Notes: a model not told the origin generated them from the letters alone. A DNA stretch of 64,000 nt from Oopsacas minuta (GCA_024704765.1 JAKMXF010000361.1:62001-126000), one strand, 5' to 3'; counted from the first letter of the stretch, positions 6,482 through 64,000 are shown. Program-made: numbers and translations.

Positions 6482-7297
6482 CTACAAAGGTTTGAATTTT
6501 CTCTGAAGTTTCATTGCAGTAATTTTTTTCTTGTCTTCATCAAACTTTTTCTGTAGCTGTAGAATATTGTCTCTCTTCTCTTCTCTCATTTGGAATTTGT
6601 AAAAGTGTAGTAATTCATTCTTTTTCTTTTTCTTAGTAACTTTCCTTAGTCGTATTTTTGAGAGATTATGTTTGGGGACCTTTTTATTATTCTTGCCAGT
6701 GACTGTTATCCAACCATCTTCATCAGGAATATTTCTACGTTTCTTAACTGTATTCTCTTCTGTTTGTCTTCTTGCGTCATATTTTGTCATAAATCTCTTT
6801 ACCTGAGTTTGGAGTTGTTCAATTTCAGGCCTCTCATCTTTGTATTCTTCTATCCAGGAATTGATTCCGATTTGTTTCACTATCGTACAACTGATAGGAG
6901 ATTCAATAGAGTTCCTGGATAATTCCTCAATACATTCTAAAGATATTTCATTTACAAATACAACGTAAGCATAGATGAAACCATCAGAATTTGGTAGCAA
7001 GATAGAGAAATACGGATCTTTGCTTGATTTTGTTGACACTTTTAAGTTTAACCCACCCAAAGACTTGCTAATATGTAAGTAGGAGATTGCACCTAATGAA
7101 TTGAATATACCAGTTACACTCTCCTTCTTCATATAGAATGGTAATCCTGCTACAAACAGGGTTTTACCATCAGGCAACTCTTTCTTGTCACTGTGGTCTG
7201 TGTGAACTTTACAATACAATGAGTGTGGATCTGATGGCAGGTCGTATTTAAACATCACATCTATTATATAATAATCTCCAACTTTATTTGAACTCAT
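6482..7297 (-). CDS. RRP7A: Ribosomal RNA-processing protein 7 homolog A (intronless)
   Basis: KTLFVAGLPFY N-terminal RRM-like region; PDEDGWITV and KKKKNELLHFYKFQMRE...KKFDEDKKKI...RKFKP form the RRP7 C-terminal domain. Confidence 0.93.
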   Translation of the reverse strand: MSSNKVGDYYIIDVMFKYDLPSDPHSLYCKVHTDHSDKKELPDGKTLFVAGLPFYMKKESVTGIFNSLGAISYLHISKSLGGLNLKVSTKSSKDPYFSILLPNSDGFIYAYVVFVNEISLECIEELSRNSIESPISCTIVKQIGINSWIEEYKDERPEIEQLQTQVKRFMTKYDARRQTEENTVKKRRNIPDEDGWITVTGKNNKKVPKHNLSKIRLRKVTKKKKKNELLHFYKFQMREEKRDNILQLQKKFDEDKKKITAMKLQRKFKPL

Positions 7298-7620
7298 CTG
7301 TATAGTGACTCTCTCTTTTGCATAAAATCACTGAAAATTTATTAGAAAATGGTATAATTTTCAAAATTTAATATTTTAGAAACTTCTACATATGTAAAGG
7401 AAGTCGGGTCTGTGGATGTGTTGATATGCCCACATTCCCCAATTGGGACCTTCAATTTCAACTATTAAATATTTATAATGTATGAGCCCAAAATTAGTAC
7501 GTCATCCTTTCCTAAATCTAAATTTGAAATTGTCTGACGTAGGCCAAATGTATACCTTTAGATCCCTGAGCTGTGGGTTCTTCAATCAATTCAAGACATA
7601 GAAATATATTCATACAAGTA

Positions 7621-8927
7621 GAACGGGCGTTCAAAAGTTCCCGACCCTACCCAATATTTTTGTAACTATACAGAATATACATGTACAATTGTTATATTTT
7701 CTCGAAATAATCACCATTAACGTCTATGACTCGTTGTAGACGATCTAGCCATTTATAAATACATTTTTATAGTCTCCGAGCGGGATACTTTTTAGGAATC
7801 TCCAAATTGCGTTCCCTAGGTCGATTCTGGTATCAAAATGCCTGCCTGCAAGGTCCTTTTTCAACTTTGCAAAGAGCCAAAAATCACAAGGAGCGAGATC
7901 AGGTGAGTAGGGTGGGTGATCTAGCTCAACAACTCTCATTCTATCCAACTCTGACTTTACGAGCTTAGTTTTATGTGGCCGTGCATTATCGTGCAATAAT
8001 CGCATGCCCCGCGGTCTAGACTTTGGCCTCTGCTCCCAGCAATGTTTTTCTACTTCTGAGAGGCAACTGTTTGCATAAAAGTCCCCGGTAATTGTCTCCC
8101 CTTTTGGTATTATAATCTGGGCGATTGGGCCATGTGCATCAAAGAAAATTGAGTACAGGGCCTTCTGACCTCTGAAGTCCGACCTAGGATTGAGAGGAGG
8201 CGCCTCACCTTTTACGACCCATACCTTATTTCTTTCTTTGGATAGTGGCTCGTCGTATCTTATCCAAGTCTCGTCACCAATAATGATTTCTGCCAACCTT
8301 CTTGGATCCGAGTCGTTATACTCGGAGAGCGTTTTCTTGCACAAGTTACCGACGGTCCTTTTGGTCCTTTGTAAGGGATTGCGGGATCCACCTCGAACAA
8401 ATTTTGCGAACTTTCAGCTCCCGTTGAGATCCCTACACTCATAGCTAACTCCTCAACAGTGATATGAAGATCTTCTTCCACTCTCCAGCGAATTTCAGAG
8501 GTGTTACTGCTAGTGACGGCGGATATGGGACGCCCGATTCGCTCCTAATCTTCCAGTGACTCTCGTCCTTCACGAAACCGCTTGGCCCACTCCTTCACAG
8601 TAGTATATGAAAGACTAGCATCTCCATAAACGACTTCCAAGTCAATGAGAATATCCTTAGGGTCAATACCAAGAAGCGTGCGAATTTTGATATAGGATCT
8701 TTGCTCCAATTTCAAATTTGAAGTAATAAATACTGGAAAATACAAGAATAGTTAAAACTGAGAAATTTGAAATAATCGTAACTAGAAAATTATTGACGAT
8801 ATATGAAAGTTAAAGTAGTTCTGAATAGACAATTGAATAATTTTCGTGTTGAATACAGATACGTAATATAACATCTTATATCTTAAAATTATATGACCAA
8901 GGTTGGGAACTTTTTGAACACCCGTTG
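7621..8927 (-). mobile_element. Mariner (Tc1/mariner, DD34D) DNA transposon, 1307 bp
   Basis: TA|gaacgggcgttcaaaagttcccgacc ... ggttgggaactttttgaacacccgttg|TA imperfect TIRs with a TA duplication, enclosing a transposase. Confidence 0.93.
7745..8745 (-). pseudogene. Mariner transposase pseudogene
   Basis: HTH region (EQRSYIK...WAKRFREGRESLED*ERIGRP), then GDETW, HDNARPH and YSPDLAPCDFWLF with 34 residues between the second and third Asp. There is an in-frame stop at 8545-8547 and a frameshift near 8400. Confidence 0.9.
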
Positions 8928-26548: not shown

Positions 26549-29500
26549 CTATATGTTTGTATCTCGAATATTGGAACTAATTTTGTTTTTAAGAAATGAT
26601 CTTTGCGCCTCCTTTTCGAGCCGTGTGAGTTTATCAAGAGAGGGTCGTACTATATCTACATGTCCCTGGTAACATGAACCAGAAGTCTCCCTCTTAACTC
26701 CATATGCTACCTTTCCATCAAACTCATTCTCAGGTACATACAGATTGCTATCAATCTCAGGTATAGTCACACCTAAATGCTCCTCAATATCTCCGAGATA
26801 CTGCTCTTCATCATACCATATACAGCAACCTCCTTCATCCTTCAAATTAGTGTTATAACAATTCTTACCACGACTAACACATGTATGGTACCACACTTTT
26901 TCTGGTACCTTAGAGGCGAAAGAAATCGCGAGTCCCATCCTCTCTGCCCGTCCCACTCGTCCGATACGATGCACATAGTTCATTTTATCGTCTGGCATCA
27001 TGACATTGATTACGTAGGGGATTCCTTTCATGTCGATACCTCTAGCTGCTACATCTGTACAGATTAAGAACTTTACTTTGTTTGCTTTGAAGAGTTCAAG
27101 GTTCTTCTTACGTTCCTGCGGTCTCCTGTCGGCGTGTAGACACACACAGGTGAAGAGAGTTGGATTCTTTTCTATTTTAGTGCCCCGGTATCCTAGATAA
27201 CGCTCCATGTTGTCACAGTCTAGTTTAGTGCGACAGAATATAATGCCTTGATCCATTTTAAGATTCTTTATTGCTTTAACAACAAGATCACCTGTATATG
27301 ATACAGTACAGAAATATTATCGTGCTAATAATAATACAGCAAGGTTGGAACCGAATAGTTCAATAATTGGCTGGCTCCCGAATACCAGTATTCAGTGTTT
27401 GGTTAGCAAACAATTATATTTCATACTTGCCAACCCTCATGGGACCTGTGGATTATCCCTGGTTTTACAAGAAATCTATGGAAATATTCCAAAATCCAGG
27501 AAAAATAATTGGTAAGTATAACATTTGACCAAATATTTGATTGAAGTATTCGGTAGGAGCGGTTTCAACCTTGTAATACAATAAACTCTGGTTTTAACGA
27601 GATGTTAGAGACCCAGGTATCATTTCTTTGTATTCGGAGTAAAATCAACTTAGTTTCATATAATAGGGAGTAAAGAATCACTTGGTTATAACGGGAGTTC
27701 ACTGTAATTATACCTTTGATTAATTTGATTGCTTCAGATAATGCTTCCGCCGGTTGAGTGCCGCTTGGATTAGTATCGTCGTGAATATGCACTCCATCCG
27801 TCCTAATTGTATTCTTCATATTGTGCCAGCTGATGTCCTTTTTGGGATCCACTCTATACACCACGTGATGGACAGTTTCAGGTACAGAGTCCTGTCCCTT
27901 CAGGTCTACCCAAGTAGGGAAGTACATGAGACGCTGTGCTAGCTTCTTAACCTCGAAATTATGGAGTGTAGCAGAGCATACTATCATCTGCAGTCTCTGA
28001 CCGTCAGTGTGAATCTGTGGTTGAAATGTTATCATTGAAAATACTCAAAATAGTCATAAATTATATGCCAACTTGGACAGGAAGGGATGTCCAGCAATTT
28101 GGATTTGTGCGTGGATCCAATATCCCGCCGAAAATTGCAGAAAATAATACCGATTTTGTAGCCAGACAATAGAAATAGCCAGTCTAATGCTAATACTGTA
28201 TGCTAGGTCCCGACATTCTACAAATGTCTCGCTAAACTACTTTTGAGTGGGAAAGATGTCATATTTCCCACCCAGACGCAGGAGCCTAATTGCGGCTATA
28301 CTTCTCACTTTGTTCTTCACCTAAGTTGGCAATTATGTAATACAAAAGGATAGTAAATTGACAATATATATATACACATATAATACATGTATGTAGTGTA
28401 AATAATATTACCTTAGGAATGTTATTATTTATTTTGTCAATAACCTCTCCGTGTCCCTGGCTAAGCAGACCATCAGCTTCATCTAACACTAAGAACTTAA
28501 CTTGATCCAGACACAGTACACCACTAGAGATGAGATCTTCCAGTCTTCCAGGAGTACCACACACAATATCAACTCCCTGATTTAATTTCTCTACCTGCAT
28601 CTTAGCAGGGTCTCCTCCTACTATTGCTAGCTCCTTCACTTCAGGATGAGTCATGTGACGCTTGAATAACATTATCTGATCTATAGTCTGGTGTGCTAGC
28701 TCTCTGGAGGGCTCTAAGATAAGACAAATAGGGGACCGTTTGTTCTTCTTAGGGTTAGAGGATATCTGAGAGAACTCTGTGAATTTAGAAGAGACATGAT
28801 TACATTTACTGAGACCCTTATACCCTTCTGGTGGATCTGATAAGAACTGTTTGTCTCCAAAGTTAAAACTCAGTTCTGCATTCTTAATCGTACAAGCTGC
28901 GTATAAAGGAACTCCGATAATATCTTTGTCTATTCTGAAAGCAATCCCCAGATCTTTGCCATTCTTAGAATAACTAATCTCTTTACTATATAGATCTAGG
29001 TAGCAGCCTAACGTGTCATTCTTCCCGAACTTCTCTCCATAATCCTCAAACTGAGAATTATATGACTTCTTACCAGTACCCCCGAATCCGTACCCCATCT
29101 CATCTTTCCCCAGTTCCAATCTCCCGTTTAGTGTGGACCAACCAATACGACACAATCCCTCATCAGTAATTGTAGCTTCGAAGTAGTAGCGACCCTCTTC
29201 AACCACTCCCCAGGTGGATCTGCACCCCTGCCAGTTCCTGTCCCTAGACTGACATACGAGTCCGTCCCGTGAAATAGCGATCTTCTCTTCTCTGTCCCAG
29301 TAGTTTAACATGCATTTCTGTGGAGCATGTTGTGATTTACCCTCCAACTGGTTCAGTAGGGTTTCCTGTACAATTTGAAGAATAGGAAGACAGAAAGCTC
29401 CTGTTTTCCCACTTCCAGTTTCCGCGGCCATCAACACATCTCCACCTCCCAGTATAAGAGGAATAGCTTCAGCTTGTACGTCTGTTGGGAGTAGCCAGTC

Positions 29501-29563
29501 CATCTCCTCGATAGCCTGAACGATCTCTGGTATAACTCCGAATTGTGAAAATGCACTCATCAC
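26549..29563 (-). CDS. DDX1: ATP-dependent RNA helicase DDX1; exons 29563-28412, 28014-27714, 27291-26549
   Basis: [13 protein letters not shown] insertion ([18 protein letters not shown]), [29 protein letters not shown]. Phases are compatible. Confidence 0.96.
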
Positions 29564-47480: not shown

Positions 47481-50400
47481 CTAAATTAAAGTTTCTTCTG
47501 ATTCAATATCAATCAGTCCTGCAGCCTTCTTATAAACCTCAGTCTCTGCCGGACTGTACTCATTATATTTTCTAGACTTCCAATAACGACAAGAATAATA
47601 GCAGGAAATGACAGCTATTAGGATAGCCAAAATAGCTATCAGAATTAAGCAAACTGAGAGTATTGATATTAGAATTACAGAAGTAGTGGTAATAGGGATA
47701 TCGCATAGGGAGCCGGTATATCCATCTATACATTCACAGAGATAATGAGTAGAATTGAGATTACTGCAACCACCGTTTTGACACGGATTTAAATAGCAGA
47801 AATCGGTCTTGTTACAAAATGTACCTCTCATACCGGGATTACACACACACGAGAATGTCCCACTATTCAAATCTTCACAAGTAGAATTCTCATGACATGT
47901 ATGGTTATGACAAGCATCGATGTATTGGCAATATTCCCCCCTATATCCTAAATCACACTTACACATAGACTCATTATAAGTAATCTTCAGACAAGTACCA
48001 TTATTACAATCTACCTCATCACAAGGATCAATTTCAAACTCACACATTACACCTGTATAACCAGGCTTACAGACACAAGAGTATGTAGTATTACCATCTA
48101 CACATGAAGCATTGTTCTCACAAGAATTAGATATACAATTATCTAGTATTACATCACAATTGGTACCTGTGTAATCAAGGTAACATGAACAGAAATAGTA
48201 TGTACCACCCCCGTTACAAGTACCATTCTGACAAGGAGAGCTATCACACAGGTCCAATTCTGTTTCACATTGATCTCCAATGAATCCATCAAAACATGTA
48301 CAATCAAATCCGTTTACTCTATCAGTGCAATTACCATTCCCATTGCAAGAATCAAGCAAGCAATCGTTAATGTTCATTTCACAATCTTTCCCAGTGTAAC
48401 CTACTTCACAAATACAATTGTAATCGCCGAATATTGGACTACAAGATCCTCTGATGCAAGGAGATGGTGAGGTGTTGCAATAGTTTATTTCTGACTCACA
48501 CTGATCGCCTGTGTATCCGGAATTACACACACAACTGAAGTCATTGAGGAGATCAAGACACTCCCCTCTCATGTTACAAGAGTTTTCCGTACAGTTAATT
48601 ACGTCCATATCGCAATCGTTACCTGTGAACCCTACATCACAAGTACACATGTAGTTGTCAACTAGATCAGTACATGTTCCATTCACACAGGGATCAGGAG
48701 AGCAATCATTGGTATTAATCTCACAAAACATACCAGTGTATCCAGGTTGACATTTACATCTGTAGCCATTAATTACATCCATACACTGTCCACCATTCAT
48801 ACATAGTACAGATTTGCATTCATCTATGTCTATTGTGCAGTTCCTTCCTGTGTAACCAGCAGCACACATACAAGAATAGTTCCCGTAGGTATTGGTACAA
48901 TTACTCTGATTCTTACATGGATTAATTGATGACTCACACTCGTCTACATCTACTGTACAATTATTCCCTTTAAATCCTAATGTACAATCACATGAATAAC
49001 TCCCGTCATGGTTAGTACAATTTCCTTCATTCTGACAGGTATTATACAATGTACACTCATCCACGTCTACTGTACAATTATTCCCTGTGTAATTAGCAGG
49101 ACAAATACACATGTAGTCACCTTCTGTATTCATACAAACACCTCCGTTCTCACAGGGCTCTGTATTGCATTCGTCTATGTCTATGGTACAATTCGGACCT
49201 GTGTACCCAGAGAAACATTCACAGTAGTACGCACCCTGTGTGTCAGTACAGTTACCGAATAAACAAGGTTGTATAACTGTACACTCATCAATATTAGAGT
49301 CACATAAGTCACCAGTATAACCAACATTACATACACAATTGAATGGAGTTGTTCCAATCATTTCACAAGTTCCGTTAAAACAGGGAAAAGCTTCACAAGG
49401 ATTGACTAGATTATCACAATGCATTCCTGTGTAACTAGGAGTACATACACAAGTGTAATCGTTCACCCCGTCAATACAAGTACCGTTATTCAAGCAGAGA
49501 TCTAGATCACAATCGTCAATATTTATTTCGCAATTATTACCACTGAAACCATCCAAACATTCGCACAGCTTTTCAAAAATATCTGTTAATGTATCTATAC
49601 TACAAGTTCCGTTATTGTGACAAGGTTCTGCCTCACATAGGGTAAGTGAGCATGTAGGGGAAGTATATCCAGCTGTACAACTACAAGTATACCCATCTGG
49701 TATTTCATTACATGTTCCTCCATTTTGACATGGAGAAGATTTGCAGGATTCAATTTCACAACTCTCTCCTTTATAAGTAGTGTTTGTACACGTGCAATTA
49801 GCGTCTATAATTGTTGACAAGTTAGAGTACATAGGAACACACGTACCTCCGTTAAGACAAGAGCAATTGAAACAAACATCTAACAGATCTAATCTCTCTA
49901 TACTGCAGTTAGTACCATTATAGGAGCATGGACATTCACAATAGTATGAGTTTATACCGTCAATACAATTACCTCCATTCTGACAAGGATTATGTATACA
50001 GTTATCTGTATTTATCTCGCACCTATTCCCTTCAAACCCTGTGTTACAATCACACATGTAACCAGGTGAGAGATTCATACAAGTCCCATTCTCTGTACAG
50101 GGGAGCTGATCACACTCGTTAATATCCATATCACAGTAATCTCCTGTATACCCAGTAGAACAGTTACATAATACAGAAGAACTGTTAGATATACATGTAC
50201 CGTTATTACAGGGATCTATAGAACAGGGGTCTACTAATAACTGACAGAATGTACCAATCCTTCCTTCCTCACAAAATAATTCTCTGCCATCATCTTCTAC
50301 CAAATTATTTGATACGATATTGAAAATAGAATTATTATTACTGAATAGAGAGAATAGTGTATCCTGTACTATCAGTTGTCTTACTCCACCAACATAACTA

Positions 50401-53400
50401 TCTAATAGAACAAATAAATTAGATAATTACAGTAGAAACTCGTTAATAAGAAGAATACGGTTAATACGAACTAATACGATATCAGGTCTATAATGGATAT
50501 CCAATAGGTATAACTCCGGTTAATAAGAACTCCAGATAAGGCGAACGACAAATTACTATAATAAAGGACTGAAGACTGCCAGCCTCATAGCTTACTAGAC
50601 ATAAGACCTCACAGTAACTTGTGAATTTTGGACTAGGGATGTTGTTATCGGCCGAGGTATTTTTATGGGAGTTACAATATTGCAGAAACGGAGCATTTTT
50701 GCCTGAATACGTTTGTAGAACAACAAATTTTCAAACATTATATGTTAAAAATTTCTTGAATATGCCATTCCACAAATATTTAGTAAGGCAATCAGCTATT
50801 CAACAATAATACATTTTCGTAGTCTAGCTTTAGCGGATTAGGAGATATCAGGAAAACATCATGGACCCAAGTTCCAGGAGCCGGCTTGGCAGCCTACAGT
50901 CCTTTATTATTGTAGTTTATGAGGGGAACAAATTTTGGCCGAGCACGTATTAACGAGGTTCCACTGTAACAGTTTACAATTCGTAGGTATAATAGTCTAC
51001 CTGCATTCATAATAGTACTATTAGCTCCAAGAAGTATATGTATAGAATAATTAGCATCTATTGGTAATGTGAAGTTGATCTTATCTGTAGTTTCATTCCC
51101 ATCAATCCTGTATACAATCATATCAGTGTATAAACTCCAGCTGACTGAATGCAGTACTCCATTAGTTACATAATTGTCTGTACGTCGTGCAAAAAGAACT
51201 AGACATAACAACAGTTAATAAATAACCAATACAGTCAGCATATAAAAGGCAGACAATAAAAGATTTAATTAAGAAAAATGTGCAAAATATGGAGAGCTAT
51301 GAAATATTATGCAGAATAGGGGAGGGTGCTCACGGAGTTGTATTCAAAGCTAAACATATTCAATCCGGCTACCACGTAGCCTTGAAGAAGATAGCCTTGA
51401 GGAAGATAGAGGATGGTATACCGAACAATATTCTTAGAGAAGTGAAGACATTAATGTCATTAGAAGAACACCCAAATATAGTACGGCTGTTTGAAGTGTT
51501 CCCACATGGTATGGGGTTTGTATTGGTATTTGAATTCATGCTCTCTGACCTATCCGAAGTATTACGTAATCACAGTATATTGCTATCAGAGGCTCAGATA
51601 AAGTGCTACATGTTGATGCTATTACAAGGAGTATCACATTGTCATAAACATAATATAATCCACAGAGACCTCAAGCCTGCTAACTTACTGCTCAGTAGTT
51701 CTGGTCACCTTAAGATAGCAGACTTCGGTCTAGCACGTGTGCACTGTCTGGCAGAGGATAGACCTCAGTACAGTCACCAGGTAGCGACCCGTTGGTACAG
51801 ACCTCCTGAACTGCTCTATGGTGCTAGGGTGTATGATGAGGGGGTGGATCTATGGGGAGTGGGGTGTATCCTGGGAGAACTAATCAACAGTTCTCCTCTG
51901 TTTCCTGGAGAAAATGATATCGATCAGCTGTGCTGTGTAACCAGGATATTGGGAACTCCGAACGAGCAAGTTTGGCCAGGGCTCTCAGACCTACCGGACT
52001 ATAAGAAGATTACATTTCCTGAGCTCCTTCCGATCCCACTCCACAAAATAGTCCCAGACGCTGCACCCCTTGCACTGGACCTCCTAGAAAGCTTCCTGGT
52101 ATATGTGTCAAAGAGGAGACTCCCAGCTGTTAGAGCTTTGATCCATCCTTACTTCTTCTCCGAACCTATCCCAGCGCACCACACACAACTCCCTTCACCT
52201 AGGACACTCCCCAAGAGGGATCTGTTCCAGATATTTAGCAGTGCTGAATTTGACCCCAGCCTCCTAATCCATCCCTCTAAGATCCCCTCTCATGTAATAG
52301 CAGTAACCACACCCACTCAAACACGAAAGATACCCAAGCAAATAACAAGCAAAAAGTCTACTACCGACAAGAATAGTAAATTCTAACATGCACTTATATT
52401 ATGTTACTATATTAATCGTAAAATATTTGTAATTCTAACAGGTTCACTCACTCTGATTATTCACTGATACTATCATTACAAGAAATCCTTCTTGTACATG
52501 GAAAATAACAATAAGAGATTCATTCCCTGTAATATAAATTGTAATCAGGAGTTGAGCTTCAAAGTCTCTTGTCCTGAAAGCAAAGCTTCCGCTAAACTTT
52601 GTTACAACAGGGAACATATCCAGACTTATGTAGACGTAAGAATCAGCTGAGAATAATGCAGGAATATCTAAAACAGAATATAGTACTAGTGATATACACA
52701 GGAAAAAGGACAACATACAAGGCCGTTGCAAGCAGATTAAAATTGGTCAGGTTAACTATACAAAATACATGGAGCTACCAAAAGTTGGTCCCGTTTACTA
52801 ATTGAATTAGTAGTTCTGTTGTATGACAGTTTAACTACCTCTATTACCAGAACCATAGATATTTGAATTTTAGGACAGTATAACGGGAGCCCCAGTTTAA
52901 CTACCCTAATTTTCTCGTATTATACTTACAATTACATATACACTTCAAAATATCATAAATACGAGCCGCTTCGCTTGCGAACATTATGTGTTCGTATGTA
53001 ACTCGGCACTTCGTGCCTTGTCAAAATGGAAGATCATGTAATGAAATTCGGAATCAGCGTATCTTGTTTCCCGATTGCGGCTGTTAAGAGCAAGTCTCTA
53101 CGTTTATTTTAAGATTTCAACTATTTGTTTAATTTATATTTGTTATGGGAAATGTTGGCGATGTACACAATATAGCTTCAATTATGCATTAGTATGGGTT
53201 TAAGACGAACTACATGGCTCCTGATTATTCAATCCGTAGACTCCAGCACTATTCATTAATCATTTTACCCTAAAAACGTTCATTGTCAGACTGTATCAAA
53301 ATTGTGAAAATTGGAAAAACACTTCCTTACGTCCTATGTGAAAATTTATGATATTTAAGTATAACATGTGAAAATTATGGTAGGTAAACAGTCATACAGT

Positions 53401-56400
53401 TCGTCTGATTGCAAGGAATATTGAAATAACGTTGTAGAGAATAACTACTGAAAATTACTTAATGAAATTACCAAATTTCCCTATAACCAGGTGTGTTTGC
53501 AGGAATATTAGGAGGGAAGGGGGTTGAAACTACAAACCCCTAATAGACCACACTGGGTTGAAACCTGACCAACCGGACCGTCTCCGACGACCATGACATA
53601 TAATATACACTATTCAAATTTCGTACTAGTCCTCACCTTGTTCACACAATTCTCCAATATATCCAGCAAAACAGTTGCAGGTGAAATCAGTAGTAGTGAT
53701 TCTAATACAATCTCCGTTTCCACTACAAGAGCTGTATTCACAAGGATCTATCATAATTTCACACGTAGGTCCTGTGTAGTTAGAGTTACAGTCACAAGAG
53801 AAAGAACCTAATGTGTTGATGCAAGTACCAGCTGATGAGCAGGGAGATTCCATACACTCATTTACGTCATCAGTACAAGTTAATCCTGTAAATCCTTCTA
53901 AACAAGAGCAAGAGTATGAGCCATTATTATTCATACAAATTGCATTGTTCTGGCATGGAACAGGTTGTATACTGCATTCATCAATATCAAATTCACAATG
54001 TGGCCCTAAAGAGAAGTAGATAACTACTCTTATGAGCCCTGGGTAATAATTTCGAAAAATTATTAGCAAGGGCTCAACCAATATACAGTGATAGAAGTTT
54101 GAAATTTGAATCACAGGTACTCCTCAATGTGCCAAATGTTCTGACGTCGTGATTTTGGCTAAATTAAATTAATTATGGGATTATTACATCACCATGACTG
54201 TACAAAAAGATATTTTGAGAATTTAATAGTACTCGAAGCACAAAGTGCAGATTACTACCGAAGAAGGCAAATAAATGGAATTTGGATGGACCATGGATAA
54301 AAAGTACATTTCTGCCATTTCATACACTCGAGGCAAGAAGTGCCGAGTATATTCCGTCGCATAGCGACCAGAAGTACTAAGAAAATTAGCTTTTAAATAC
54401 TTAAGCTAACCTGAGGTACTAAGCTGTCGCGTAGCGACCGAGCAAGGGGAGCACGCTAGTATTGTCATAAGACCAAAATAGGCCACTTTAATCACAGAGA
54501 TATTTGTGTAACTTTTTGTCAGTTGATCTTCTATGGGCAATTAACCAATCTAAACCAACAAGACAAAACTTGGAACCGAGACCGACTAGTCAACTTGGGT
54601 GTGGTCATGATAGTTTAGAATTTTATACAAGGTGTGACCATAGCCCGCAAGAGTTTGAAACCTTGCTGTAATTGTTAGTTAAACAAGTATATACTACGTA
54701 GAATGTTAGCAACCCACCTGTATACCCGATAGTACAATTACAAGTGAAATTCCCTCCGTCATCCTGCTGGCAAATTGCTCCATTCTCACAAAGAGAGTAC
54801 AAACAAGGATACAGAAACACGTCACATAGACTGCCAGTGAAATTCTCACCGCAAACACATACAAATCCATTAACAACATCTAAACATGTAGACCCATTCA
54901 GACAGGGGTTACCAATGCACTCATCGATATCAAGTTGACAGTCTACACCCGTGTAACCGGGGTCACACTGACAAGTATAGGAATTCTTCCCGTTAACACA
55001 CAGGCCGTTTAAACAGGGAGAGGATGAGCACTCATTAACATCTTCCTGACACATCAACCCTGTGTAGCCAGAAGGACAGTAGCACTCAAATCCAGACCCT
55101 ACTGGAACACAGTGACCTCCATTCACACATGGAGAGGAGAGACATTGATTCACTTCTTCTGTACAGTTTGTACCTGAGATAGAGAGAGAATGATAATCGC
55201 TCAGTAATAGTTTTAAACATTGATTACATATTAGCCATTGGATAAGTCGTTCCTTATCCGAGTTACATGCTATTCATATTCGTAATAACGAGTCTACTGT
55301 AGTGAGCATCGAGAAACATCAATAATAGATTAATAAATATGAATAAATCAAACAGACTATATTAAGATAAATAAGACTGAGTAGCAACGAGTATAACATA
55401 ATATTATTTTAATTCCCCTTCATCTTCTCTTTGAGACTCAGCAGGTGTTTCAGGAGGAACATATAGAGGATTCTGCTTAGCAAGGAGTGATACTAGCTCA
55501 GTACATACATGCTCGTCCTCCTGGAATAGATTGTTTTTCAATGAGACTCTCAATAGTCCTGGTTTATATGTATTCTTAGGTTCTGTTGTCTGCCACATAA
55601 CAGCAGCTATTAATAAAGATACACTCTCTACTGACATTAAGTTATAAGATAGGTTTAAGCTGAGTAGAGTCATATTCCCTGGAATAAATATCTGCTTTTC
55701 TCTCATAGATACCTTCTCCAGGAGAGGGTTAGCATACTCAATAGTATCTTGTTTATCAGAATCTATTTGTTCCTGAGGCCTCTTAGCTATCTTACTGCCA
55801 GCACGTTTCTTAGCACTTTCCACATGTTTAGCTTTTGTTCTTTCAACAGGTTTGGCAGATTTTTCATCTTTTGGTAAGTTCTTTGAAGTAGCAGTAGCCT
55901 TATGTGTAGTAGAGCGTAGTTTAGCAGAACTAGTGCCATCAGGAATAGGGGAGGGAGTACCTTGATGGATACCTAGCTTATTAGGACTGTCTACAAGTTC
56001 TCTTGTGTGAGGATTTTCAGCTGTTAGAGTAGCAAATATGAGAGTTCTACGCTCCATTATTTCTTCATGAGTTAGTGGAAACTCTTGCAATACAGACTTA
56101 GATAAGAAATCTGTCATAACATCAGTGAGAGCGTTACCAGCTAGAGAGATACCGTGTAGAGTTCTGTTTGTTCTAAGTCCCTTCACTATATCAATACTCT
56201 TAGTGTCATCCAGTTGGTTGTTGGATAAATTCAAGAATATCAGAGATTTATTCTTCCTAAGAGCATTACCTATAGCTATACACTGAGAAGATGAGAGAGC
56301 ACATCCACGTAATGAGAGAGTATCAAACACAGATCTCTCTTGTGTGAGGAGAACACTAAAGTCTCCCTCAGGGATAGGGTTACCGTCTAGATTGAGCCGT

Positions 56401-59400
56401 TTAAGAGAAGTGAGACTAGCAGTTAGTGTAGCTAGCTCAGATAGAGTCCTCTTACTCATTCCTACATTCCATAGAGAGAGAGATTGTAATTGAGGATAGA
56501 AAGGAAAACATACAGACAGTATATTTAACAGCTGGGAGGTTAGCTTATAGCCTCTGAAAGAGAATTGTTTCAACGTAGACAAGTCATGTTCATCTTCATA
56601 ACAAACTTCAATACGTGGAGATATATATTCTGCATTAGGAACAAGTTTGTAGCTGTGAAGGGATGAGATATCTTCGTGCTTTGCTCCGTTAGAAGAAGAA
56701 AGTTTTTCTTCAGAAGATCGAGGCTTATGAACTACAGGTATTTCATATATTCCCTCTTTCTTACAGAGTTTAGTGAAGTCTTCAGGGAATATACCTTTAG
56801 GAGTGTAGACAGAGTCATCTTCTGTGCCCTCTTGAGTGGGGTTAGGCGTTTTTAACTTTTCACTTTTCTTGCGCATTCTACTCTTTGTTAATTATGTAAT
56901 TTGTTAGAACACCCTCACTGATCCGAACAACACTCCAATTACAAATAAATTGTTAGGATTCGTGAAATGCATTGAATTAATGCTATAGTAAGCTTCGGAT
57001 TTAACAACATTGGTTCTAGCGACAAATCGCTTATAACGACACTTACTCTAGCCCATATATCTCCAGCAATATTTCTACACACCATACTTCAGGTATAATG
57101 ACATGTTAGATAAGGACACTTCGGATATATCGACACTTTTCCATGCCTGATGCATCTAAATTACATCGGAAATTACGACTTTGGCGAATTTTATACTGTG
57201 TAATGCAGAAATGCTTTCTGTATATGCAGGAACTTAGCAAAATCAGTCTAATTTGTAAATAATTGGGTTTGTATTTATCTAACTATACAGAATATACCAT
57301 TAAACTTCTCTTGTTTTGAATCATACATTTTCCGTCTAAACAAATGGAAACGCATTTAAATATAGTCATTATGTACAATGTAATTTCGAATAATTTCTAA
57401 ACCTACATATCATCATCCTTATAGATTCAGGCGGAGTTGGCTAACGGAAGCGACAAGTATTGAGTAATCTATATTACACTTACATGTACATACAGCCTTT
57501 ATGCAACTATATATTACTCATTATACTAATATCACCAAACTTGTTCGTCATATGTATAGTTTGGTTTTCGCATGAGCGTTGCAACATATTAAAATGAATG
57601 TATTTGGAGTCCATCAAAGTATATACTATATACAATACATTCGGAGTAACTTCGGATTTAGCGACACATCCTATATAACGAGCTATTTTGCTTGCCCAAA
57701 TGAGTGTCATTAAATCCGAAGTTTACTGTAGTTCAGTTTTCCGAACAAACGATGAAAAGGGTGCCAACATGTGTAATTCAGTATTATGTATTTGTTCGCA
57801 GTAGAATTGGACACAGCACGGGAAATAAAAAGAACATTATTGAAAATTTTCCAAAGGTTTTGTATCAATTAGGGCCTGTTCGGATTAGCGAGGGTCTACT
57901 GTAATTAAAATAATTAGACATCAAACTAACATTAAATAAATGAGAATTATTGATACAAATATAAAGTAACCAGTTCATTCTCATTAATCAATAACATTAC
58001 TGTTAATATAATATATTCACTTCTCGTAGGGAGAGGATTCATTGTCAGGATGTTCAATATCACTTTCTGAGTCTGATTCATTCGGACCACGAGCCTTATG
58101 GTGAATACAACAACAATTAGATTTCTTCTTCCCCATGTGTTCGTTATCAATCACATCTTCTGACCATTTAATCTCCTTTTTAGGTTTCTTCTTAAGTATC
58201 AATATTTGTTTAGAATCAGTGGGTTCAGTAATCTTAGTAGTAGTAGTGGTAGTAGTAGTAGCTGTAGTGGGAGTCTTAGTGGTCTTTGTTCTTGTTGACA
58301 TTTAGCTAGTTTTACTTAATTAAACAAATAAATATTTAAATAAAAATAAATGCCCAGCTATAATAATAAAGAGAACACAATACTCAAATAGGCAATTTAA
58401 TATACAAATGTGAGAGTAGTGGCCAAGTACATTACATCACTACCTACTGAGTCTGGTAAAATTCGCTACTCACAAGGGTGATCATATAATCGACAACTAC
58501 ATTACCACACTTGCATATAATATATACGTTAAATTTGTTTATATCCATAATTGTCCACCAGTGAGTTAGGACTTAGGAGTCATATATGCACTATTAGGGG
58601 AACTGATGTTTTATGAAATTAAGTAACCAACTTGAATGAACTATTGAGTACAGATTATGGATAATTACTATTAGACAACACTTATTGTAGTGAGTAAATA
58701 ATTACAAGACTAAGCATTTAACTTTAATACATAGCACATCGTGACTTACTACAATAAATGTACGAATAATAAACATCAGAGGCTAGGTAATCAAATACGA
58801 TGTATGCAGGAGAGCATGAGAGACAGAGAGACAGCTGTTGTAATAAACACAAACAGAGCAAATAGGATAGACCAGATAGGTTCACGATAACAGTACACAT
58901 ACAGAGTACGTTGGTAGTAATATTCGGTCGAGACGAAGCTAGAATTATAGTAAATTACGTCAAAATTTGAATGAGATAATTCTGAAAAGGAAACAATATA
59001 ATCGATTGTTCTTAAAGATGAATTATTCACAAAAAAGTGGTATTTTTGTCCTGATATCGCGACATTGCGTAATAATAACCAGTATCCGAAGCTTTACAAT
59101 ATGATAGATAACAGTGAATATATCGAGGATATACGCAAAAATCTAAATCGAAGAGAAACAACTTAGGAGCCACGTATCTATCAGATGTGTTATGAAATGG
59201 ATTCAGCTGGAATACAGTAGAGTTAGCAATCATCCAAATACACATGTAGGTTATATTCTGATATTTGGTAGTAAATGGTTGTAGCTTTGCTTGTATTATT
59301 GTCATATTTCAAGCCTTGTAGGTAATCTAAACAACCATAATTCGAATTAGGCAGATGATAAGAAGAATTAAATTTATATTTACATATGATTGGCTGGTTG

Positions 59401-62400
59401 TTCAACTGAGAATTCTATGTAAGGACAATCTTGTGATGGTTTATATACTTCACCTCTTGCTATTGGGACTCTACTAGAATATGTCTGTATCATGAGCGGA
59501 GATAGAAGCAAAGAATACAATACACTAACAGTAGTAATGATAGATATATAAGCTACTAACATAGCTCTATCTTTGAGCTTTTAGAAAGTATGATGAAGAT
59601 GATCCTGATTAGTCAATGTAGGTGTGTCGTCAGTTTTCACATCAGCTGTGTGGAATCCTGAGAACTTTACCTTAGTACGGTCACGGAAAACTAACCATAC
59701 AATAACAATAAAGAGAGAGCATAGGATGCTTGGGAGGAATGACAAGATGGATAACACCATCATAGCGTATTTATCACAATTTGAATCAAGCTTAGATGAC
59801 CGGATATGTAATCTCCATCGGTTGAGGAATTTCCTATTAATAAGTTTCAATACCATTTGCTAAGACATAACAGTAACCAGAGAAGAATATTAACGAAATT
59901 ATAAACATTTCAATGAAAGAGAAAACGTTTAGAGAGTAAGTTCCCCAGGCGACTGTCCTTAAGAGTCTAAAAGCGCGTACTTTGTCTTCATAGCGATATC
60001 TCTCCAGGTACTCCGTGTTTATACCTCTAATGAAATCCTTTATGTACTTAGTAGCAGTTCTTAATGTCATTCTTACAAATGTGAATACAAAGAAAAGTCG
60101 ACTGAATGTGTCAAATAGATAGAATATGCCGAATATAACCGAAGATAGAGAAAATAATCAAAAATAAAGATGGTTACGAAATATGAAATTAACAAAGACA
60201 ATACATTCCCAATGTTGAATTCCAAAAGAAATAAGTACACCAATCGGAAGATAATAAAAGTCAAAATTCTACTGAAATAAAACTTCTTCCTTTTCAAATA
60301 GTTAGCGATTTGTAACAACAAACTAGGACCAAACAACACTATTCCTTCTTGGAGAGCGAAAGAAATGGAACCTACAACATAACTGATTTGGAATTGATGG
60401 TCTCATACGTTATTAGTAACAGAGACTGACAAATAGATTTGAAATATTACATTAAACACGTTGAACCCTGAAATGCATAGAACTATTCCTAAAGAAACGC
60501 TTGAAAATGTTGGTAGTAGGCAGTTATTATCTGCTTACCATCAGGATCAGGAGTGTGGTATTTAACTATGTTACGATATTTTAAAACTTGCATAATTAAC
60601 TGACCAGCTAAACGTGTGTTGACTGGGATAGTAAGGAAACAGAAACGGAGAATAGGATAGAAATGACCAGCACGTAGTATTGATTTTCCGTGTTATTGCA
60701 AAGATCATAATTGCGTTCTGTAACACAAACAAGAAATAACTGGTAAACATTTCAAATTCTAGTATCAGTAGTCAATGATAGTACTTCATAAGATGAATCA
60801 CACAACTCATAATGCATACTGTAGATATATGGAGTATCGCATTCCATTTGCTTGAATTCCTTAAAGGACTAGTGTACCAACAGGATTATAGGAGGTGTGT
60901 ACCTCTTTATCTGATGTAAATGGTGGAACGACGAAATTTGTATTCTTAATTGGAATACGTATTAACTCATTGAAAAGTGTACAACAAATATGTCTATTAT
61001 CAATCCGGATCAGAGTACTAACCCTGTTGGAAATAATAAAGTTATATTGCATTAAATAAAGATTAAGCGGGCACCAAATTAATATACTCTGACATAACTC
61101 TATGTAAAATATATTAATTAAGTATAATGGAGAATTATGTTGGGTACTATATTGACTTGTGCGTCCCTTGGAGATTGAGACCCGACCAAATGGCCCCCCA
61201 TAGCGCACAGAGGTACTGTATAACAGTGTATATACAATAACAATATATAAAACTACCTGTGTATGTCTCGGTACAAGTACAGTTATAACTGAACTCAGTA
61301 GTAGTACACACTCCACCATTCTCACAAGGAGTAGGGTCACAAGGATTGAATATTGATTCACAGCGGGCACCAATAAATCCACTAGGACAGTCACAAAAGA
61401 GTTCGGTTTCTGACAGCTGACATGCGCCATTATTCTCACAAGAATCTGGTTGACATGAAATACACGAACTACCTAAACAAATGGTCATAACTGTTAATAC
61501 AAATACAAAATCTTACTAGAGAACATGGGAGGATATCGTATATATAAAATAATACTATAAGAGTATATGCTTATGTGAAAAATTTGTAAATACAGTGATA
61601 TTCTCAAAAAAATGAGCACTTTATATAAATTTCATCTAGTTGGGCTTTACAAGGCAAACATCAACATTCACAAAAGTTAAACAAATATTATTCCCCTGCA
61701 TATGATCCTGGGTAGCTCGTAAAGCAGTAATACATACCGGATTGTATAGAGTCCTGTGGACAGCTGCAGGTAAAGTTACAGATAGAATTGTTGAGTAAGG
61801 TATCACATGAAGGATCACAAACTGAATCTGATTCACATTGAGAGCTTGATAAAATGCTATAGAGAAACAACAAATTTAGGTTTAACTCAAACTTAAATGA
61901 AATACAAGAATAACTACAATCAGTCAATCTGAATACTAATGTTAACCTGCTATTAGAAGTAGGTGTAAGAACATTAAGGAATACAGGCTGATCTAAGTAG
62001 ACAGGGTTGCTGATACAGCCTCTACACGCAGAAGAGGAAGTGGAAGGGAAATAAGTTAGTGTTGAATCGTAGCCAAGAGTTATTTCATTCTGAGGGGAGA
62101 ATATATTACTGAGGCTTGGGTCTACAATACAATAAAACATAATATATCAAATGTTAATACATACGCATGATTTCTTGTGGTCAAGGTCATGAAATTATGT
62201 TTGGATCGCATAATATCTTATATTATTGGTAGCGAATTCGCTAAGAATAACCAATACAGTATTACTAAATGATTTGAAAGATCTCGAATAAAACAGAAAT
62301 ATTAAATCAATATACGAGACCTTTAAGTTTGACTATGTAGGTATACTTCCAATTTTTCACTTTCTAAATTAGCATACGTCCATTATTGTCGCCCTTAATC

Positions 62401-62784
62401 TAGGAGAACGCCACACAACCATGGCCATGATATGGCCGCAAAATTGAAGGAATAATGTATATGGGGTGAAAACCCAAACATATGTATAGGAGCAAAAGAT
62501 GTGTCCCAAGCGTGCGGAATAATATTATAAGATGACATAATGTAGGATATTAAATATTATTATTACCTGTATACTCTCCTATCTGGTTACTATCCAACAG
62601 TAGAATAACATAATTATCAGATCTAACAAGTAGTATAGTGTGAGGAGAGGAATCATTTATAAAGACAGAAGACTGTCTAACATATAGCTGGTTAATCTGT
62701 AAGTTTACCAAACCATCTGTTAGAAAAACGAGTAGATGAGAAGATGAGTTAGTACCAAGCTGTATCAAGATGCAGTCACTCACT
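47481..62784 (-). CDS. crb: Crumbs-like LamG/EGF single-pass protein (5'-incomplete); exons 62784-62567, 62121-61947, 61856-61738, 61472-61257, 55173-54718, 54005-53637, 52667-52452, 51198-51001, 50401-47481
   Basis: Calcium-binding EGF repeats (DIDEC...C.N..G.Y.C.C..GYTG..C), two LamG-like segments, one TM, and a 35-aa tail with YSPAETE and C-terminal ETLI. All eight junctions are GT-AG with matching phase. Confidence 0.75.
50430..50966. mobile_element. pogo/Tigger-type MITE, 537 bp, in last Crumbs-like intron
   Basis: TA|cagtagaaactcgttaataag ... cgtattaacgaggttccactg|TA. Confidence 0.8.
51289..52386 (+). CDS. CDK20: Cyclin-dependent kinase 20 (CCRK), intronless, nested antisense in Crumbs-like intron 51199-52451
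   Basis: MESYEILCRIGEGAHGVVFKAKH, VALKKIALRKIEDGIPNNILRE, HRDLKPANLL, DFGLAR, HQVATRWYRPPELLYGAR are diagnostic CDK20 motifs. Confidence 0.92.
   Translation: MESYEILCRIGEGAHGVVFKAKHIQSGYHVALKKIALRKIEDGIPNNILREVKTLMSLEEHPNIVRLFEVFPHGMGFVLVFEFMLSDLSEVLRNHSILLSEAQIKCYMLMLLQGVSHCHKHNIIHRDLKPANLLLSSSGHLKIADFGLARVHCLAEDRPQYSHQVATRWYRPPELLYGARVYDEGVDLWGVGCILGELINSSPLFPGENDIDQLCCVTRILGTPNEQVWPGLSDLPDYKKITFPELLPIPLHKIVPDAAPLALDLLESFLVYVSKRRLPAVRALIHPYFFSEPIPAHHTQLPSPRTLPKRDLFQIFSSAEFDPSLLIHPSKIPSHVIAVTTPTQTRKIPKQITSKKSTTDKNSKF
52958..53025 (+). mobile_element. 5' fragment of the Helentron-like family
   Basis: atacgagccgcttcgcttgcgaac...actcggcacttcgtgcc matches 6017-6090. Confidence 0.6.
54322..54460 (-). 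mobile_element. Related Helentron-like fragment
   Basis: ctcgaggcaagaagtgccgag is the reverse of the family hairpin; cgtagcgacc repeats follow. Confidence 0.45.
55404..56876 (-). CDS. LRRC71: Leucine-rich repeat-containing protein 71-like, intronless, same-strand nested in Crumbs-like intron
   Basis: RI-type LRRs (LQSLSLWNVG, LKRLNLDGNP, LIFLNLSNNQLDD, LRTNRTLHGISLAGN), EFPLTHEEIMERR and PGNMTLLSLNLSYN match LRRC71. Confidence 0.8.
   Translation of the reverse strand: MRKKSEKLKTPNPTQEGTEDDSVYTPKGIFPEDFTKLCKKEGIYEIPVVHKPRSSEEKLSSSNGAKHEDISSLHSYKLVPNAEYISPRIEVCYEDEHDLSTLKQFSFRGYKLTSQLLNILSVCFPFYPQLQSLSLWNVGMSKRTLSELATLTASLTSLKRLNLDGNPIPEGDFSVLLTQERSVFDTLSLRGCALSSSQCIAIGNALRKNKSLIFLNLSNNQLDDTKSIDIVKGLRTNRTLHGISLAGNALTDVMTDFLSKSVLQEFPLTHEEIMERRTLIFATLTAENPHTRELVDSPNKLGIHQGTPSPIPDGTSSAKLRSTTHKATATSKNLPKDEKSAKPVERTKAKHVESAKKRAGSKIAKRPQEQIDSDKQDTIEYANPLLEKVSMREKQIFIPGNMTLLSLNLSYNLMSVESVSLLIAAVMWQTTEPKNTYKPGLLRVSLKNNLFQEDEHVCTELVSLLAKQNPLYVPPETPAESQREDEGELK
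56905..57901. mobile_element. Probable degenerate pogo/Tigger-type element between PPP1R11 and LRRC71
   Basis: Right end gttcggattagcgagggtctactg|TA; left partner accctcactgatccgaac is degenerate. Confidence 0.45.
58017..58301 (-). CDS. PPP1R11: Protein phosphatase 1 inhibitor-3 (Ypi1/PPP1R11), same-strand nested in Crumbs-like intron
   Basis: KKEIKWSEDVIDNEHMGKKKSNCCCIHHK contains the RVxF-type motif, the DNEH motif and the CCC motif. Confidence 0.92.
   Translation of the reverse strand: MSTRTKTTKTPTTATTTTTTTTKITEPTDSKQILILKKKPKKEIKWSEDVIDNEHMGKKKSNCCCIHHKARGPNESDSESDIEHPDNESSPYEK
58791..59562 (-). pseudogene. Frameshifted ectodomain + first-TM fragment of a GPCR-like membrane protein
   Basis: Signal-like start MLVAYISIITTVSVLYSLLL, Cys/Asn-rich segments over four overlapping ORFs joined by frameshifts, ending in a hydrophobic helix (PIWSILFALFVFITTAVSLSLML). 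Confidence 0.45.
59581..60837 (-). pseudogene. Decayed multi-TM (GPCR-like) gene
   Basis: MECDTPYIY...NNTENQYYVLVISILFSVSVSLL, followed by several hydrophobic helices broken by stops and frameshifts, ending ...SILCSLFIVIVWLVFRDRTKV...HHTF*. Confidence 0.45.
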
Positions 62785-63488: not shown

Positions 63489-64000
63489 CTAAGAATTGAT
63501 TTCTTCTCGTGGCTGTGTAACTATATCTGAACAGATCTCAAGTCTTGATAAGACCCTCTCCTTCCCTAGAATACTAACCAGATTCCCGATAGTTGGACCC
63601 TTATAACAACCTGATAAAGCTAGACGTAACAATGTAAGGAGCTCTTGAGTACTAACGTGTAGCTCCATGGCCCATTTTGAGTAGGATACCTCAGCCAGGT
63701 CCTGAAAGAAATCCAGATTCCTGAACTTGCTAATTACATTCAGTAATAAGTCAGGGAGTGAATCAATAGAGATAGAATCAGTGTATGCTAGCAAGAGATC
63801 AGGTGTAGGGTTCTTCCAGAAGTAGCTGTGTTGTTCTGTTATCTCCTTCAGCAATATTATGCGAGTAGGGAAGGCTTGTAATACACTTTCTATATACTGT
63901 ATGTTCCTATATTCATCTGGAGCTGAGGGATAGTAATCTGTTTGTGAAAGAAGTTCTTCTAATTCAGATACCAAACTACCTCTTAGTTTGTCATCTGTTA
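63489..64000 (-). CDS. EARS2: Glutamyl-tRNA synthetase, mitochondrial type, C-terminal anticodon-binding part (5'-truncated)
   Basis: Frame is open to the window edge; RIILLKEI, LLRLALSG...GPTIGNLVSILGKERVLSRL is the typical GluRS C-terminus. Confidence 0.8.
   Translation of the reverse strand, partial: TDDKLRGSLVSELEELLSQTDYYPSAPDEYRNIQYIESVLQAFPTRIILLKEITEQHSYFWKNPTPDLLLAYTDSISIDSLPDLLLNVISKFRNLDFFQDLAEVSYSKWAMELHVSTQELLTLLRLALSGCYKGPTIGNLVSILGKERVLSRLEICSDIVTQPREEINS

Follow-up and report, generated by a model that had tools for sequence, protein, structure and literature searches.

A stretch of 64,000 nucleotides (nt) of the Oopsacas minuta genome (contig C361:62001-126000, hereafter the window; positions above 64000 continue the window numbering) was analyzed for a Crumbs gene and for the complete genes that lie within its introns. 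The host gene is on the minus strand, and six guest genes were located in three of its introns (introns 2, 6, and 9), four of the six on the host strand and one of them a transfer RNA (tRNA) gene. The locus was compared with its counterparts in three independent long-read assemblies of other samples, L002 (ERZ25766962), L003 (ERZ25072740), and L004 (ERZ20067936). The gene order common to these relatives runs from Crumbs exons 1 and 2 through tRNA-Met, a glutamyl-tRNA synthetase (GluRS), the LamG exons, an EGF exon, PPP1R11, LRRC71, further EGF exons, an antisense kinase, and the large last exon to a dynamin gene, with EGF exon 6 missing in L003. Protein identity between O. minuta and the three relatives ranged from 44 to 80% across the conserved genes of the locus.

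Intron 6 of the host (55174-61256, minus strand) is exactly 6083 nt long, begins with GT and ends with AG, and contains the guests PPP1R11 and LRRC71. Exon 6 (61257-61472, minus strand) encodes one EGF module plus most of the next in 72 codons, with phase 1 at both ends, and closes on ...ACA CAG|GTAGTT, where one base of the following codon is left over. Exon 7 (54718-55173, minus strand), also phase 1 at both ends, opens on ...CTCAG|GT ACA AAC TGT and supplies the rest of the split EGF module plus three and a half more. The codon divided at 61257|55173 is GGT, and the junction reads ...CTETYT-G-TNCTEEVNQC, a normal EGF linker. The Pfam EGF model was matched on both exons (E-value (E) 2e-9 for exon 6 and 1e-24 for exon 7). 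Since these two phase 1 exons jointly complete one EGF module, the guests are placed wholly between two exons of a single host.

Both ends of the intron are conserved. The end of exon 6, ...YTG|GT, is identical in L002 and L004, and all four genomes share the acceptor of exon 7, ...CAG|G-xNCTE; the orthologous introns in L002, L003, and L004 measure 2841, 6217, and 3553 nt, respectively. In L002, the coding regions of PPP1R11 and LRRC71 occupy 62% of this intron. A scan of intron 6 in O. minuta returned no further EGF exon and no signal peptide, and the open frame of exon 7 contains neither a start codon nor a signal peptide upstream of its EGF modules. Judged by its splice sites, frame, and conservation, the junction 61257|55173 is real, and the exons flanking intron 6 are those of one host gene. 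An earlier note on the window had proposed this junction, with phases 1/1, a perfect EGF linker, a length of 6083 bp, and no other EGF exon or signal peptide in between, and each of these points was borne out. The same note had named a signal-peptide first exon belonging to the downstream part as a finding that would speak against a single host; it was looked for before exon 7 and none was found.

In L003, the 72-codon exon 6 is absent; exon 5, whose end is likewise in phase 1, has to be joined straight to exon 7, so that the frame survives the loss. In the place of exon 6, L003 (5576-11794) has approximately 4 kb of unrelated DNA with a 214-amino-acid (aa) open reading frame (ORF) on the other strand (7094-7738).

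The first guest in the direction of host transcription, PPP1R11/Ypi1 (protein phosphatase 1 inhibitor 3; 58017-58301, minus strand), is an intact, intronless gene of 94 aa that matched the Pfam family PPI_Ypi1 (PF07491) with E 7e-19 and 67.7 bits against a gathering cut-off of 27. It is single copy in the O. minuta genome, and its orthologues, found in the same place in L002, L003, and L004, are 73-80% identical. The second, an LRRC71 orthologue (55404-56876, minus strand), is likewise intact and intronless, encodes 490 aa, and was identified by similarity to named LRRC71 proteins. It matched the Patiria miniata LRRC71-like protein with E 2e-50 and 31% identity over 94% of the query, as well as many other LRRC71 proteins of echinoderms and molluscs; single leucine-rich repeat models of Pfam all scored below their own cut-offs on it. 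LRRC71 orthologues that are 60-71% identical were found in six ENA assemblies, among them those at the same place in L002-L004. Exact database look-ups of the two guest proteins returned no record. The claim that two intact conserved genes lie on the host strand inside this intron is thus upheld by the Pfam match, by the similarity to LRRC71, and by the relatives, in all of which both genes are intact, intronless, and on the host strand as in O. minuta.

Two further features share intron 6 with these guests. Between exon 6 and PPP1R11 there is a gap of 2955 nt in O. minuta, which includes a stretch of abutting, frame-shifted open frames with hydrophobic segments (58727-60402, minus strand). 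Seven open pieces of at least 75 aa were counted on its sense strand, whereas 500 shuffles gave 1.05 on average and 5 at most. This stretch coded once or still does, and the excess fits a decayed or orphan gene. Six of the pieces gave no match to 7tm or any other Pfam family, the pieces had neither a match in the protein atlas nor a paralogue in the O. minuta genome, and no counterpart of the stretch was found in L002, L003, or L004, which makes it species-specific among the genomes compared. Two G-protein-coupled-receptor-like pseudogenes had been reported here at first; with all four kinds of search (Pfam, atlas, paralogues, relatives) without a match, a seven-transmembrane receptor identity is unsupported, and the excess of open frames is what stands of that claim.

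Between PPP1R11 and LRRC71 lies an interspersed repeat resembling a miniature inverted-repeat transposable element (MITE; 56978-57730, no strand assigned), which the first reading of the window had overlooked. The element is short (about 750 nt) and non-coding, with terminal inverted repeats of about 20 nt, and the genome contains at least 50 matches to it. The copy at C361:25696-26410 is 99% identical, which points to recent movement. With the repeat inside it, the spacer between the two guests is 1140 nt in O. minuta, versus 223-302 nt in the relatives, where the repeat is absent. Shorter pieces with MITE-like ends lie near 57870-57900 and 55270-55300, also in intron 6.

The host gene was modeled over its full length of about 27.7 kb, with 11 coding exons on the minus strand that total 5499 nt (1832 codons plus stop). 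Its start lies 11 kb beyond the end of the window and had been overlooked at first. The model was verified exon by exon for frame, splice sites, and phase, and searches were made with individual exons. All 11 exons are open in frame, the introns are GT..AG in ten cases out of ten, and between start and stop codon the phases agree from each exon to the next.

Exon 1 (74685-75191, minus strand) has a signal-peptide-like start followed by an all-beta domain, and exon 2 (73882-74111, minus strand), upstream of GluRS, ends in ...SFQVRS; both correspond to conserved pieces in the relatives. The exon 2 piece of the relatives ends in ...SFQ(L/V)R(T/S) and supplies the first strand that is lacking from the LamG domain in exon 3. 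Exon 3 (62567-62784, minus strand; phase 2 in, phase 1 out; conserved in L002-L004) is the middle of this second LamG domain. It covers positions 6-75 of 126 in the Laminin_G_2 profile (E 3e-4, slightly short of the cut-off) and contains no start codon, so that one LamG domain, leaving off at ...SFQVRS and resuming at profile position 6, is split by intron 2. The domain is completed by exon 4 (61947-62121, minus strand), which is supported by splice sites, frame, and conservation. Exon 5 (61738-61856, minus strand; phase 1 out) is cysteine-rich and EGF-like, with splice sites and conservation in its favor. Downstream of intron 6 and exon 7, exon 8 (53637-54005, minus strand) encodes EGF modules (Pfam EGF_CA, E 5e-17) and is bounded by splice sites. 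Exon 9 (52452-52667, minus strand) is conserved in L002-L004 and has no Pfam match; by eye, it is the start of a third LamG-like domain, the end of which is encoded by exon 10 (51001-51177, minus strand; splice sites, conservation). The last exon (47481-50296, minus strand) encodes some 22 EGF modules along with a transmembrane helix and a short tail, and is 44-52% identical in L002-L004.

After the single transmembrane helix, the tail comprises fewer than 40 aa, with ..EYSPAE.. and a C-terminal ETLI; the canonical Crumbs tail motifs RxxxGxYxPS and ERLI do not occur in the O. minuta host. A hexactinellid Crumbs variant with an ETLI tail and an xYxPx motif, O. minuta included, has been described by Belahbib et al. 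(PMC5968619), who reported one Crumbs gene per sponge. By its sequence, the host is the single published O. minuta Crumbs gene with the ETLI tail. Like Crumbs (CRB) polarity proteins, it combines an ectodomain of EGF and LamG domains with one transmembrane helix and a short tail carrying FERM-binding and PDZ-binding motifs. Unlike other Crumbs proteins, the hexactinellid host has LamG-like domains at the N-terminus and in mid-protein, and its tail motifs are divergent, a divergence already published (PMC5968619).

The remaining guests occupy introns 2 and 9. Intron 2 measures 11,097 nt in O. minuta and less than 2 kb in L002. Just after exon 2, on the host strand, it holds a tRNA-Met(CAT) gene (C361:134764-134837, window numbering 72764-72837) that is found in all four genomes (L002:5457-5532, L003:1271-1346, L004:2078-2153); an RNA polymerase III gene has thus been retained inside an intron of an RNA polymerase II gene across the four. 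The same intron also contains, in antisense orientation, an intronless actin-family gene (C361:133124-134269, window numbering 71124-72269, plus strand; Pfam E 5e-116), which among the four genomes is present in O. minuta only. The third guest of intron 2 is the mitochondrial-type GluRS on the host strand, the 3' part of which lies in the window (63489-64000, minus strand; full ORF 64970-63489). It matched the Pfam families tRNA-synt_1c (E 1e-80) and Anticodon_2 (E 1e-14) and keeps its position in L002, L003, and L004. Intron 9 contains a CDK-like protein kinase gene antisense to the host (51280-52386, plus strand; Pfam Pkinase, E 8e-63), with its position and strand unchanged in L002-L004. 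Phase and domain continuity of the host holds across each of the three introns that contain guests.

Elsewhere in the window, a 199-aa ORF (7745-8344, minus strand) resembles, by eye only, a fragment of a mariner-type transposase (DDE-like, ...HDNARPH...). A DDX1-like DEAD-box/SPRY helicase gene with several long exons was located at 26549-29563 (minus strand); this gene, together with a nearby 1031-aa kinesin and a 1320-aa ORF, illustrates the very long exons typical of the O. minuta genome.

Taken together, the locus is best read, with a probability of roughly three in four, as ordinary self-contained genes nested in the introns of Crumbs, which would be excised from the host transcript as part of those introns. 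The protein-coding guests are compact, intronless, and conserved, and each would have a 5' and a 3' end of its own; the polymerase transcribing the host would pass through them, and the spliceosome would join the host exons across them. Read-through and splicing would be eased because the guests have no introns and no canonical AAUAAA signal. We infer splicing of the host messenger RNA (mRNA) across the guests, independent transcription of the guests, and some means of avoiding premature 3'-end formation.

This bears on two costs of same-strand nesting that had been put forward in the earlier note, namely that the host must read through at least two polyadenylation (poly(A)) signals and must skip internal acceptors. 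A search for AATAAA or ATTAAA within 400 nt of both guest stops found none, and several non-nested genes of the window likewise lack these hexamers. As ordinary genes are also without them, poly(A) signals are not locatable from sequence here, and the first cost is weakened accordingly. The second is weakened as well, because intronless guests bring no cis-splicing acceptors into the host pre-mRNA.

Several observations weigh against reading the locus so simply. Exon 1 has no Pfam match, its predicted structure (predicted local distance difference test score, pLDDT, of 52) was too poor for a fold search, and what ties it to the gene is position, strand, conservation, and phase only. A word-indexed protein search with the open frame of exon 7 returned generic EGF proteins only, at no more than 47% identity. 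For the exon 4-5 frame, full HMMER searching of the representative library yielded a single hit, a bacterial repeat protein judged spurious. With the last exon, the results were swamped by Notch, Crumbs, and fibropellin proteins (31-42% identity) and included nothing from a hexactinellid. None of these single-exon searches recovered a spliced relative. When conservation of promoters was sought, the guest spacers in the relatives proved to be only 223-556 nt long and not alignable between species. Finally, an acceptor-like AG stands just before most of the start codons tested, those of both guests included. If this AG marks general spliced-leader trans-splicing, the acceptors of the guests should compete with that of the host, and a picture of simple read-through and splicing would be incomplete.

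The acceptor-like AG also bears on a rival explanation. PPP1R11 and LRRC71 (and GluRS) might have no promoters of their own and be freed from the Crumbs pre-mRNA by leader trans-splicing and 3'-end cleavage; the guests would then form an operon lodged in an intron, and each precursor would yield either the host mRNA or the guest mRNAs. In keeping with this, a (T/C)AG precedes the ATG of PPP1R11 and LRRC71 by 1-5 nt in O. minuta, L002, and L003 and by 11-13 nt in L004. Among the long ORFs of the window and of L002-L004, an AG lies no more than 12 nt from the ATG in 25 of 29 cases, whereas control ATGs have one in 59% (p = 0.0015). For the glass sponge A. vastus, a spliced leader some 37 nt long has been published (PMC10282587). 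The spacers in the relatives are short (223-302 nt between the guests, as given above, and 230-311 nt between the end of LRRC71 and the acceptor of the host), and of the six guests, four share the strand of Crumbs.

The AG before start codons is often part of TTAG or CTAG (for example at 58306, 56878, 64976, and 39300), and nested and non-nested genes do not differ in it. Genes outside introns thus carry the motif, and so do actin and the kinase, the antisense guests; as these cannot derive from the host precursor, the motif does not show a shared precursor; as it stands, the pattern fits either leader trans-splicing or start-codon context. In addition, the leader was present on only 4% of A. 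vastus long reads (PMC10282587), and a leader on a guest would not reveal which promoter had made the precursor. A common need for the same expression would also seem unlikely for Crumbs, an LRRC71 of the sperm/cilia type, and a housekeeping inhibitor of protein phosphatase 1. Release of the guests from a shared precursor is accordingly considered unlikely. A longer motif of 7 nt, A[AT][TC]TAGC, was seen before several start codons and was rejected, with no overall enrichment (53 copies versus 54 expected).

The earlier note had also proposed that host and guests might be processed from one precursor by competing cis- and trans-splicing. If most glass-sponge genes receive a leader at an acceptor close to the ATG, every sense-strand guest would bring a functional 3' splice site into the host intron. 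In intron 6, these putative acceptors would fall at about 58306|58305 for PPP1R11 and 56878|56877 for LRRC71, the donor at 61257 would choose among three acceptors, and the locus might act as a splice-competition switch, a proposal that must be regarded as doubtful. If it were true, use of the far acceptor would give Crumbs, use of the near acceptors, whether for a leader or in cis, would give the guests or out-of-frame chimeras, and the output of host and guests would be coupled on one precursor.

Far less probable is a division of the locus into two genes, with the upstream LamG and EGF exons forming a gene for a secreted protein, the downstream EGF modules, transmembrane helix, and ETLI tail forming a separate gene, and the guests being intergenic. 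An annotation that disallows nesting would split the locus in just this way, and that of O. minuta counts only 83 nested genes (PMC10282587). Against such a split, exon 6 stops in the middle of an EGF module at a conserved GT donor, and reading on from there yields a non-conserved tail of 40 codons to a stop. Exon 7 in turn begins in mid-EGF at a conserved acceptor, with no upstream ATG or signal peptide in its open frame; the phases match, and the joined module has the normal spacing C-x-C-x5-G-x2-C in all four genomes. Even where exon 6 has been lost, in L003, exon 5 ends in phase 1 and the frame is kept. An assembly artefact, by which the content of the intron was wrongly inserted between two Crumbs exons, has a negligible chance of being correct and is refuted by synteny, because the order and orientation of the intron contents are the same in ERZ25766962, ERZ25072740, and ERZ20067936, a check on relatives and on misassembly at the intron ends that had been suggested with the original observation.

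Nested genes are well documented in glass sponges. In A. vastus, 2432 nested genes (12.4% of genes) were reported, often conserved between hexactinellids (Francis et al. 2023, PMC10282587), and the figure of 83 for O. minuta is described there as an under-count for technical reasons. Like those of A. vastus, the guests of Crumbs are compact, mostly single-exon, wholly intronic, and conserved among hexactinellids; glassin has already been named as an O. minuta example (PMC10282587). Unlike the genes of that report, the Crumbs locus brings together six guests in three introns of one well-known host, with a tRNA among the guests and four of them on the host strand. Strand orientation of nested genes is not reported in PMC10282587 (the phrase "same strand" has 0 occurrences), and a published description of the Crumbs nested-gene locus was not found.

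The locus can also be set beside nested genes of other animals. As in the same-strand nesting known from human and Drosophila, a complete gene lies in a host intron in the same orientation; unlike there, as much as 62% of the intron is taken up by guests in the relatives. The initial premise that nested genes are mostly antisense holds for the majority of human nested genes (about 63%), and about 41% of nested genes are single-exon; with about 37% sharing the strand of their host (PMC3192792), sense nesting is the less common arrangement but not an exception, and glass sponges are rich in nested genes (PMC10282587). Unlike mammals, a glass sponge may use spliced-leader trans-splicing, which would add competition among acceptors. 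The spliced-leader operons of nematodes and tunicates resemble the guest cluster in having close same-strand genes with an acceptor-like AG before each start codon. They differ in that the cluster described here sits inside the intron of a third gene and that antisense and non-nested genes share the motif.

The Crumbs locus is therefore a well-conserved and unusually crowded example of a phenomenon already published for glass sponges, and not a new kind of system. Its value lies in a corrected full-length model of the only Crumbs gene of a hexactinellid and in the correction of an annotation, given that a pipeline forbidding nesting would split or truncate Crumbs. It also offers a compact test case for the coexistence of sense-nested genes and their host where, as in this lineage, very compact genes and spliced-leader trans-splicing occur together. 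The gene model matters because Crumbs is used in arguments on the evolution of epithelial polarity, here in a syncytial animal.

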